Assembly (NCBI RefSeq): GCF_964194025.1
Contig: NC_134477.1
Span: 53,940,001 to 54,004,000, forward strand
Direction: 5' to 3'
Source: Convolutriloba macropyga
Taxonomy: Eukaryota
DNA length: 64,000 nucleotides
A model generated the notes under the pieces. That model ran no database searches. It was not told the origin of the DNA and saw nothing but the letters and a program-made list of their open reading frames with translations. Made by a program: the position numbers and the translations under genes. Below, piece after piece: positions 1-48,992 of this stretch. Every line of letters begins with the position of its first letter. The first letter of the stretch is position 1.

Positions 1-3000
1 TTCGAAGTCGAAGACAACTGAAGGAAAAAACGGAACAGCTGTTTCGAAGCCAGGCAGTAAACCTTCAGGTACTCAAGGCTCAAATGTATCGGCATCTGTT
101 GTTCACTCCCGGGGTACTTATGGTCAGAGCGGAGTTACGGAAAACGATGATCTTGGAGAGGAGGGCAGTAGTGCCGCGAAAAGCAAGTCAGCACTTTCGA
201 AATCAATGGGAACAGCGGGAAAAAGTAGAACCGATACTGGGGGCTCCAGGACTAAACCTTCCGGTAAAAGTGGCCCCGAGCTTAGTGTAGAAGACAATCA
301 GACTTCGACTTCATATGGAACACCGACTGAAAAAGTTGCAAACGGTTCTAAACGGACGGAGGGCCTGGATGAAGACGCAGAAGTTGATGAAGACCTGAGT
401 GGGGATGGTTTCACTGATGGGAAAAGCGGAGCTGGTTTTTCGAAGTCGAAGACAACTGAAGGAAAAAACGGAACAGCTGTTTCGAAGCCAGGCAGTAAAC
501 CTTCAGGTACTCAAGGCTCAAATGTATCGGCATCTGTTGTTCACTCCCGGGGTACTTATGGTCAGAGCGGAGTTACGGAAAACGATGATCTTGGACAGGA
601 GGGCAGTAGTGCCGCGAAAAGCAAGTCAGCACTTTCGAAATCATTGGGAACAGCGGGAAAAAGTAAAACAGATACTGCGGGCTCCAGGAGTAAACCTTCT
701 GGTAAAGGTGGCCCCGAGCTTAGTGTAGAAGACAATCAGACCTCGACTTCATATGGAACACTGACTGAAACAGTTACAAAAGGTTCTAAACGGACGGAGG
801 GCCTGGATGAAGACGCAGAAGTTGATGAAGACCTGAGTGGGGATGGTTTCACTGATGGGAAAAGCGGAGCTGGCTTTTCGAAGTCGAAGACAAGTGAAGG
901 AAAAAACGGAACAGCTGTTTCGAAGCCAGGCAGTAAACCTTCAGGTACTCAAGGCTCAAATGTATCGGCATCTGTTGTTCACTCCCGGGGTACTTATGGT
1001 CAGAGCGGAGTTACGGAAAACAATGATATCGGAGAGGAGGGCAGTAGTGCCGAGAAAAGTAAGTCAGCACTTTCGAAATCATTGGGAACGGCGGGAAAAA
1101 GTAGAACAGATACTGGGGGCTCCAGGAGTAAACCTTCCGGTAAAATTGGCCCCGAGCTTAGTGTTGAAGACAATCAGACTTCGACTTCATATGGAACACT
1201 GACTGAAACAGTTACAAAAGGTTCTAAACGGACGGAGGGCCTGGATGAAGACGCAGAAGTTGATGAAGACCTGAGTGGGGATGGTTTCACTGATGGGAAA
1301 AAGGGAGCTGGCTTTTCGAAGTCGAAGACAACCGAAGGAAAAAACGGAACAGCTGCTTCGATGCCAGGCAGTAAACCTTCAGGTACTCAAGATTCAAATG
1401 TATCGGCATCTATTGTTCACTCCCGGGGTACTTATGGTCAGAGCGGAGTTACGGAAAACAATGATATCGGAGAGGAGGGCAGTAGTGCCGCGAAAAGCAA
1501 GTCAGCACTTTCGAAATCATTGGGAACAGCGGGAAAAAGTAGAACAGATACTGGGGGCTCCAGGAGTAAACCTTCCGGTAAAATTGGCCCCGAGCTTAGT
1601 GTTGAAGACAATCGGACTTCGACTTCATATGGAACACTGACTGAAACAGTTACAAAAGGTTCTAAACGGACGGAGGGCCTGGATGAAGACGCAGAAGTTG
1701 ATGAAGACCTGAGTGGGGATGGTTTCACTGATGGGAAAAGTGGAGCTGGCTTTTCGAAGTCGAAGACAACCGAAGGAAAAAACGGAACAGCTGCTTCGAT
1801 GCCAGGCAGTAAACCTTCAGGTACTCAAGGGTCAAACGTATCGGCATCTGTTGTTCACTCCCGGGGTACTTATGGTCAGAGCGGAGTTACGGAAAACGAT
1901 GATCTCGGAGAGGAGGGCATTAGTACCGCGAAAAGCAAGTCAGCATTTTCGAAATCAATGGGAACAGCGCGAAAAAGTAGATCAGATACTGGGGGCTCCC
2001 GGAGTAAACCTTCCGGTAAAAGTGGCTCCAAGCTTAGTGCAGAAGACAATCAGACTTCGCCTTCATATGGAACACTGACTGAAACAGTTACAAAAGGTTC
2101 AAAACGGACGGAGGGCCTGGATGAAGACGCAGAAGTTGATGAAGACCTGAGTGGGGATGGTTTCACTGATGGGAAAAGTGGAGCTGGCTTTTCGAAGTCG
2201 AAGAGAACTGAAGAAAAAAACGGAACAGCTGTTTCGATGCCAGGCAGTAAACCTTCAGGTACTCAAGGGTCAAACGTATCGGCATCTGTTGTTCACTCCC
2301 GGGGAACCTATGGTCAGAGCGGAGTTACGGAAAACGATCTCGGAGAGGAGGGCATTAGTGCTGCGAAAAGCAAGTCAGCACTTTCGAAATCAATGGTAAC
2401 AGCGGGAAAAAGTAGAACAGATACTGGGGGCTCCCGGAGTAAACCTTCCGGTAAAAGTGGCTCCAAGCTTAGTGCAGAAGACAATCAGACTTCGCCTTCA
2501 TATGGAACACTGACTGAAACAGTTACAAAAGGTTCTAAACGGACGGAGGGCCTGGATGAGGACGCAGAAGTTGATAAAGACCTGAGTGGGGATGGTTTCA
2601 CTGATGGGAAAAGTGGAGCTGGCTTTTCGAAGTCGAAGAGAACTGAAGAAAAAAACGGAACAGCTGTTTCGATGCCAGGCAGTAAAGCTTCAGGTACTCA
2701 AGGGTCAAACGTATCGGCATCTGTTGTTCATTCACGGGGAACCTATGGTCAGAGCGGAGTTACGGAAAACGATGAGCTCGGAGACGAGGGCATTAGTGCC
2801 GCGAAAAGCAAGTCAGCACTTTCGAAATCAATGGGAACAGCGGGAAAAAGTAGAACAGATACTGGGGGCTCCCGGAGTAAACCTTCCGGTAAAAGTGGCT
2901 CCAAGCTTAGTGCAGAAGACAATCAGACTTCGCCTTCATATGGAACACTGACTGAAACAGTTACAAAAGGTTCTAAGCGGACGGAGGGCCTGGATGAAGA

Positions 3001-48856: not shown

Positions 48857-48992
48857 GTACCGAGACGCCGAGCCACTATGCAAGCGGGCTCTAGAAATTA
48901 GAGAGAAGGCACTTGGTCCAGACCATCCTGATGTAGCAAAGCAGTTGAACAATTTGGCATTACTCTGTCAGAACCAAAACAAATACGATGAG
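48857..48992 (+). CDS. KLC: KLC exon, TPR3-4: [45 protein letters not shown]; gene continues beyond the window
   Basis: Acceptor tttttag|G and donor GAG|gtaagt. Matches [49 protein letters not shown] did not find the next exon before 64000. Confidence 0.97.

Follow-up and report, generated by a model that had tools for sequence, protein, structure and literature searches.

Few adaptor subunits of animal motors are as conserved as the kinesin light chains (KLCs). Known variation lies mostly in C-terminal splicing, and the N-terminal lead is a few dozen residues long; to our knowledge, the heptad coiled coil of all KLCs binds the stalk of the kinesin heavy chain. In other cytoskeletal systems (giant ankyrin-B/G, MAP1B/Futsch and the neurofilament side arms), a conserved cytoskeleton-binding module gains thousands of residues, disordered and often repetitive, from a single multi-kilobase exon. 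Here we analyze a 64,000-nt stretch of the genome of the acoel worm Convolutriloba macropyga (contig NC_134477.1, positions 53,940,001 to 54,004,000; hereafter the window, with positions counted from its first letter and negative positions lying to its left), in which a giant repeat-bearing exon stands in front of a KLC core. We consider it probable, on the sequence evidence, that a single C. macropyga gene encodes a KLC whose disordered lead of ~4,180 residues is continuous with the coiled coil. The resemblance to the ankyrins, MAP1B/Futsch and the neurofilament side arms appears to be one of layout only, their sequences being unrelated to that of the C. macropyga exon; in ankyrins the giant exon is internal, is subject to alternative splicing and has known neuronal roles, whereas the exon described here is N-terminal to a motor light chain. 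A literature search found no giant-exon KLC, and the works it returned on KLCs with an N-terminal extension and on disorder concern no giant KLC.

KLC exons downstream of the giant exon

On the forward strand a single frame, still open at the left window edge, continues uninterrupted from position 2 until a TAA at 7325-7327. A previous interpretation, made from the letters of the window and referred to here as the sequence-only reading, described this frame as an exon of more than 7.3 kb that ends in KLC-like heptad sequence and belongs to a protein of probably over 2,900 amino acids. The ending is borne out by our analysis and both sizes proved too small: the exon comprises 12,369 nt, from -5046 to 7323, in the deposited gene model, so that it starts ~5 kb left of the window, and the protein would reach ~4,700 amino acids. 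The splice proposed in that reading, GA/gtaagt to ttag/G, was located as well, with the 3' border of the giant exon (exon 1) reading GCTGA/gtaagt at 7323/7324 and the acceptor of exon 2 reading tttag/G at 16085. The last ~45 codons of the giant exon encode ..FNFDDQMKSTKSCMHSLEQLRSQHEQMLNGLQQSKQLQQDEAE and are followed by GA/gtaagt. This tail occupies the alignment columns in which 12 conventional KLCs have their start, ..QDEIIxxTKxVxQGLExLKxEH.., and exons 2 and 3 follow colinearly. AlphaFold2 (AF2) predicts a helix for the last 40 residues, with a predicted local distance difference test score (pLDDT) of 91-97, and values below 50 for the remainder of the segment.

The seven exons that the sequence-only reading had placed downstream were all found, by motif scans together with tblastn searches using the KLC of a related species (P0003), and are KLC by sequence. 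All have GT-AG borders and phases that are compatible throughout; exons 3 and 5 would not fit each other in phase directly, and the 88-nt exon 4 restores the frame between them. A splice model begun at 6902 is stop-free over 1,326 nt, or 442 codons. Exon 3 matches residues 72-141 of KLC1 (PDB 9pmb_C, E 1.1e-16), and the best PDB matches of exon 8 are the TPR domains of KLC1 and KLC2 (whole-chain E 2e-55; best domain i-E 3e-21, ~87% identity). A Pfam run, one of the checks suggested earlier, identified TPR_10 and TPR_12 in exons 6-8. The order proposed before, a heptad, a linker and TPR1-4, stands from the heptad to helix A of TPR4, and the claim of four complete repeats does not, as TPR4 is only half contained in the window. 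The exons for TPR5-6, the rest of TPR4 and the C-terminus were not found in 49000-64000.

P0003 provides a test of the splicing. It is the sole protein returned by a search restricted to the exon 1 tail, has 779 amino acids and the full KLC TPR content in Pfam, including TPR4 helix B to TPR6, and is encoded on a 2,510-nt intronless contig (L003) from a marine metatranscriptome (JGI 3300008998). Residues 138-601 of P0003 and the spliced window model align in one BLASTP high-scoring segment pair (73% identity, 486 columns), and all seven predicted junctions are confirmed by this single alignment to a relative's mRNA. Identity rises to 84% in the KLC core, and the segment FDDQMKSTK..QSKQL is the same at 36 of 36 positions in P0003 and at 35 of 36 in a third species (L005, described below).

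The window protein shares with conventional KLCs (KLC1/KLC2; PDB 3nf1, 3ceq and 9pmb; oyster, sea urchin and Nematostella) the exon-by-exon order and the acidic linker, with ~55% identity over ~345 residues of core and ~87% in TPR3. The Leu-Phe-Pro (LFP) of the autoinhibitory LFP-acidic motif, which lies between heptad and TPR, was not found: LFP is absent from all forward frames in the 20-kb interval between exons 3 and 5, and the linker exon has an acidic ..LGLDIGDLDD.. where other invertebrate KLCs have ..LDLGFPEDDD.. The most conspicuous difference is in the lead. In the 119 conventional KLCs that were retrieved, 2-72 residues (median 19) precede the heptad, a lead as short as the sequence-only reading had held, vs ~4,180 in the predicted C. 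macropyga protein.

Structure of the giant exon and the deposited gene model

The open frame of the giant exon is established beyond the window. When the unique tail was searched against proteins, two open reading frame (ORF) calls came up, P0001 (4,088 amino acids, 100% identical) and P0002 (3,356 amino acids, 99% identical), which are encoded by two contigs of one ENA assembly, L002 and L001, respectively. L002 equals the window over 17,327 nt without a difference, window position 1 corresponding to L002:14941, and its stop-free run before the exon 1 donor is 4,088 codons. The other two frames have at least one stop in each repeat unit. The coding part is purine-rich, with a GC content of 0.48 and a GC skew of +0.2, and the introns after it have a GC content of ~0.33. 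Both ORF calls begin at a TTG, with an in-frame stop 33 codons upstream, and the first ATG in frame comes only after ~950 codons from the acceptor of the giant exon; the giant exon must therefore be internal. We rejected one candidate for its 5' side, in which an acceptor tcttcctcgacag/GA is spliced straight to exon 0: the deposited model has its acceptor ~60 nt further upstream and includes an additional exon, 0b.

That model, P0123 (NCBI/UniRef; chromosome OZ077308.1 of GCA_964194025.3), is a nameless protein of 4,219 amino acids with no Pfam match. Its gene spans OZ077308.1:53,927,385-53,947,327 (L006 10001-29943) and consists of the giant exon, identical in sequence, and two 5' exons, without any KLC exon past the first. 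P0123 ends in ..QQDEAE at the TAA that is created by reading through the exon 1 donor, and KLC exon 2 is outside every annotated gene. The prediction that automated calling would overlook the KLC link is thus borne out, the deposited model stopping inside intron 1, and the annotation likely splits one gene in two and hides its KLC identity. Table 1 gives the coordinates of these exons and of the main parts of the arm.

Table 1. Positions of the KLC exons and of features of the giant exon, in window coordinates
Feature	Position	Strand	Description
Exon 0	~-12616	+	124 nt; carries the ATG; GT-AG borders; from deposited P0123
Exon 0b	~-9110	+	~159 nt; GT-AG borders; from deposited P0123
Array B (part of giant exon)	1..5805	+	438-bp (146-aa) in-frame units; 13.3 copies in window; 96% identity (Tandem Repeats Finder, TRF)
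Unique arm part	5806..7120	+	Ser/Gly/Lys/Glu/Asp-rich; predicted disordered; from translation and composition
Motif PPTEFG[KR][KR]Y[ED]NL	7121..7156	+	Identical or conservative in window, L003 and L005
Heptad start	7196..7323	+	3' end of giant exon; phase 2
Donor GTAAGT	7324..7329	+	Read-through gives in-frame TAA 7325-7327, the stop of the deposited model; context identical in alternate haplotype
Exon 2	16085..16154	+	70 nt; heptad, ending ...RIESGLADAQ
Exon 3	26442..26687	+	Main heptad, heavy-chain-binding coiled coil (by homology); 94% identical to P0003
Exon 4	36662..36749	+	88 nt; acidic linker (..DELGLDIGDLDDARD..); phase 0 to 1; tblastn with P0003 408-433, 81% identity
Exon 5	47195..47306	+	Linker end and TPR1 helix A
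Exon 6	47898..48011	+	TPR1 helix B and TPR2 helix A; Pfam TPR_12 9.7e-6; 100% identical to P0003
Exon 7	48381..48518	+	TPR2 helix B and TPR3 helix A; Pfam TPR_10 2.2e-12; 96% identical to P0003
Exon 8	48857..48992	+	TPR3 helix B and TPR4 helix A; last KLC exon in window; Pfam TPR_10 4.5e-12

Repeat arrays and predicted disorder of the arm

Two tandem arrays, both in frame, make up much of the arm. TRF run on the whole exon gives 10.6 copies of a 228-bp (76-aa) unit at 90% identity for array A, and 14.9 copies of the 438-bp unit at 96% for the full array B, which begins ~707 nt left of the window. Each unit of array B has a basic Ser/Lys-rich block followed by acidic Asp/Glu patches (..GLDEDAEVDEDLSGDGF.. 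and ..ENDDLGEEG). P0123 has a mass of 428 kDa. The arm contains 43% Ser, Thr and Gly and 13% hydrophobic residues; its charged fraction is 0.27, its net charge per residue -0.01 and its grand average of hydropathy -1.06. Disorder is the state expected, and predicted, for the arm. Composition supports it and so, weakly, does AF2, in which ~400 of 508 residues of the last arm segment have a pLDDT below 50, single-sequence input making this weak evidence. Pfam assigns no family to any part of the arm, and at E<=0.001 the unique arm segment matched only itself among 1.84 billion representatives.

Two minor features of this region were recorded. At 6401-6481 a short three-strand beta element (..KEFEVQLGSKGTLGVKSLTSE.., pLDDT ~80) is predicted, the sole confident non-helical structure in the last 508 arm residues. 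On the reverse strand, a 241-aa ORF at 6730-7455 crosses the end of the giant exon; most likely it merely reflects the high purine content of the coding strand.

Related species

Long extensions ahead of the heptad are present in two other species. P0003 has at least 240 codons there, and its frame is open up to the 5' end of the contig. Residues 128-266 of this protein correspond to the final 147 encoded by the giant exon (from ~6878; 54% identity, E 3e-34). L005 (JAAUXW010193183.1), a 1,891-nt genomic contig of the third species with introns of ~55 nt, was found by scanning metagenome contigs with an alignment of the window and P0003 tails. It is open for 394 codons from its first base and starts with a 69-bp (23-aa) array of 4.1 copies; then come the same heptad start and a GA/GTAAGA donor whose phase is that of the window exon, followed by exon 2, again 70 nt long and equal in its phases, and by exon 3. 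Both relatives share with the window the divergent KLC core, the PPTEFG..Y.NL motif and a long Ser/Gly/Lys-rich in-frame extension. These extensions (at least 240 and at least 394 codons) end at contig edges, and neither shows the 12-kb array set; the L005 unit has 23 residues, whereas those of C. macropyga have 76 and 146. The periods of all arrays in the window exon and in L005 are multiples of 3. Pfam found no families in the P0003 N-terminus or in the L005 extension.

The PPTEFG motif lies ~14 residues ahead of the heptad homology and ~20 ahead of an internal Met codon (7214). Upstream of this Met, comparison of the window with L003 gave proportions of non-synonymous (pN) and synonymous (pS) differences of 0.29 and 0.72, respectively. 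The low pN indicates selection on a translated sequence and speaks against the internal Met as the sole start of translation. Synonymous sites are saturated among the three species (pS 0.7-0.9), and they are therefore not close congeners. Sequence conservation makes the PPTEFG..Y.NL motif the best candidate for a specific interaction.

All 605 of 605 proteins that match P0003 at E<=1e-20, among the matches listed, are KLCs. In a maximum-likelihood tree the window protein and P0003 form a pair with 100/100 support that falls outside the KLCs of cnidarians and bilaterians and has a very long branch. Such a branch may reflect a fast-evolving acoel orthologue; it would equally allow a divergent paralogue.

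Haplotypes, coding constraint and assembly

C. macropyga has a heterozygosity of 3.65%, and its alternate haplotype is deposited separately (PMC13650328). In the non-coding flanks, the contigs L002 and L001 agree at 94-96% of positions and have ~1 indel per 100-170 bp; across the 12-kb exon they differ by only nine indels, all in frame, consisting of whole 76- or 146-aa units or of 1-3 codons. The arm is therefore under established coding constraint, and pN/pS is 0.5-0.74 for the arrays and 0.35 for its unique parts, in which 9 changes are synonymous and 11 non-synonymous. The haplotypes encode 4,088 and 3,356 codons; the gap of 732 residues arises from gains and losses of whole units in both arrays.

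A misassembly at the repeat/KLC junction, the danger named with the sequence-only reading, was checked directly. Contigs from four independent DNA runs cross 5580-7360 unbroken, and the runs are of genomic DNA, intron depth being like exon depth. The nine differences between these contigs and the window are exactly those of the L001 haplotype, which keeps the same junction. A false join between the repeats and the KLC sequence is all but excluded.

Discussion

We envision one gene consisting of exon 0 with the ATG, exon 0b, the 12,369-nt exon and the seven KLC exons in the window, with the remainder beyond 64000. Its product would be a protein of ~4,700 amino acids and ~480 kDa, in which ~4,180 Ser/Gly/Thr/Lys/Glu/Asp-rich, near-neutral, block-charged residues precede the heptad. 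We infer that both repeat arrays, in addition to the last ~150 residues of the arm, are within the KLC mRNA of C. macropyga. A kinesin-1 tetramer would then carry two such arms at the junction between heavy and light chains.

Several observations weigh against this model. Searched alone against the PDB, the exon 1 tail gave no KLC match, returning chance coiled coils only, as it is too short and too divergent. The deposited annotation stops the giant protein at the intron 1 TAA, and if RNA-seq guided P0123, transcripts that join 7323 to 16085 may be rare. In P0003, residues 1-127 gave no alignment to the giant exon or to the 18 kb upstream of it, and a search with its first 135 residues over the window and those 18 kb yielded compositional matches only, so the relative may have a much shorter arm, or its transcript may be a short isoform. 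The arrays, finally, are weakly constrained, and the length gap between the haplotypes fits a near-neutral expansion. As to the relative's N-terminus, its weak colinear similarity to exon 0b (shuffle p ~0.008) serves as a lead only; if the similarity is real, the exons of the relative would follow in the same order and its arm would be much shorter.

The weak constraint on the arrays bears on an alternative that accepts the giant KLC and denies its arrays a function. They would represent near-neutral, runaway expansions of coding minisatellites in a tolerant disordered leader, and only the segment next to the coiled coil would matter. A difference of 732 residues in repeat number between haplotypes fits such an expansion, as does the array pN/pS of 0.5-0.74; the three species share only ~70-150 residues by the heptad and differ in their repeats, and the arm has no homologue besides itself at the threshold given above. 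Set against this, the frame is kept over 12 kb, while the flanks have an indel every 100-170 bp, and at least two species have a long repeat-bearing extension, all array periods being multiples of 3. Frame retention separates functional from functionless arrays poorly, because the downstream KLC needs the frame anyway. We regard functionless arrays as possible, if doubtful.

In another alternative the locus makes two products: an arm-only protein of 4,219 amino acids, ending at the TAA of a retained or terminal intron 1, and a KLC of ~700-800 amino acids that arises from an internal promoter or acceptor in the last ~500 nt of the giant exon. Arrays and TPR domain would then seldom, if ever, occur in one product. 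The deposited model and the unannotated exon 2 are as this scheme would have them, an in-frame Met (7214-7216) lies at the heptad start, and the relative's transcript shows ~240 extension codons rather than thousands, with its first 127 residues unmatched in the giant exon. The frame of this transcript is open at its 5' end, however, and the transcript may be truncated. No stop codon, poly(A)-type break or shift of frame separates the arrays from the heptad, and no convincing polypyrimidine-AG acceptor is present at the onset of the P0003 homology. Protein conservation reaches upstream of the internal Met in three species, and in L005 the repeats share the open frame with the heptad at a distance of less than 900 nt. 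It would also be odd for an arm-only product to terminate with 45 residues of a KLC coiled coil. Taking these points together, we judge two products unlikely. An assembly artefact, in which an array was misjoined to the first KLC exon, can be dismissed as highly improbable: long tandem arrays misassemble readily and the assembly was heavily curated by hand (PMC13650328), but four DNA runs cross the border, the second haplotype has the same junction and open frame, and two other species have the same arrangement.

Returning to the single giant-KLC gene, we consider the most likely role of the arm to be that of a long, flexible, multivalent sidearm or tether, in which bulk and the repeated basic and acidic blocks would count and exact length would not. 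The sequence-only reading had proposed a spacer or tether, a microtubule-binding or condensate-forming domain, or a tissue-specific structural module. A role that depends on a precise length is disfavored by the haplotype length gap and by the weakness of the constraint on the arrays. Among functional readings we give this one somewhat less than half of our confidence. The PPTEFG..Y.NL motif, the only sharply conserved element, is probably the part of the extension with an ancestral function, and the arrays would be lineage-specific expansions. A stronger version holds that the 12.4-kb exon is constitutive in the main or only KLC mRNA, that the arrays provide multivalent contacts with microtubules or cargo, and that they expanded within acoels from a shorter conserved leader; we put this forward tentatively, and as a whole it is rather improbable.

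If the model is right, a disordered arm of ~0.43 MDa would be the largest known elaboration of kinesin-1, placing a huge flexible polymer where the light chain meets the heavy-chain stalk, a region involved in autoinhibition. If the arm were constitutive on every kinesin-1, it would represent a previously unseen mode of modifying a conserved motor. The finding is lineage-specific and should be surprising for the kinesin field. The locus also provides a concrete case of annotation error, a deposited model that ends in an intron and conceals a KLC, and it is an example of a conserved gene enlarged by coding minisatellites, with a difference of 732 residues between the haplotypes of one animal. 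The giant-KLC claim is cheap to check, because poly(A) RNA-seq of C. macropyga is already public (ERR13669978; PMC13650328).

Neighboring gene and intron contents

Upstream on the same strand lies a gene for a 548-aa protein of phosphoacetylglucosamine mutase type (PGM_PMM_I, AMG1_II, AMG1_III and PGM_PMM_IV). It ends ~6.6 kb before exon 0 (L006 1-3372 / L004 3567-3821) and bounds the KLC gene on its 5' side.

Three introns contain features of their own. Intron 1 has very high-copy interspersed repeats at 7331-8070 and 8660-9000, the first of them ~8-37 nt past the exon 1 donor, with a summed contig depth of 1e5-1e6 vs ~90 for unique DNA. Intron 3 holds a 309-codon Ser/Gly-rich frame on the forward strand (27073-28002), in phase with exon 3 through a weak acceptor, aaatataaag/G at 27072/27073, and ending at a TAG with an AATAAA ~115 nt downstream; a stronger acceptor at 27030/27031 would yield LKN-stop, and Pfam finds no family in this ORF. 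Since the relative's mRNA links exon 3 directly to the linker exon, the frame is at most an alternative terminal exon. In intron 4, on the reverse strand at 39756-45892, are two partial copies of a non-LTR (long terminal repeat) retrotransposon, ~3.1 kb apart, with RVT_1 (E 3e-30 and 7e-25) and Exo_endo_phos_2 domains.

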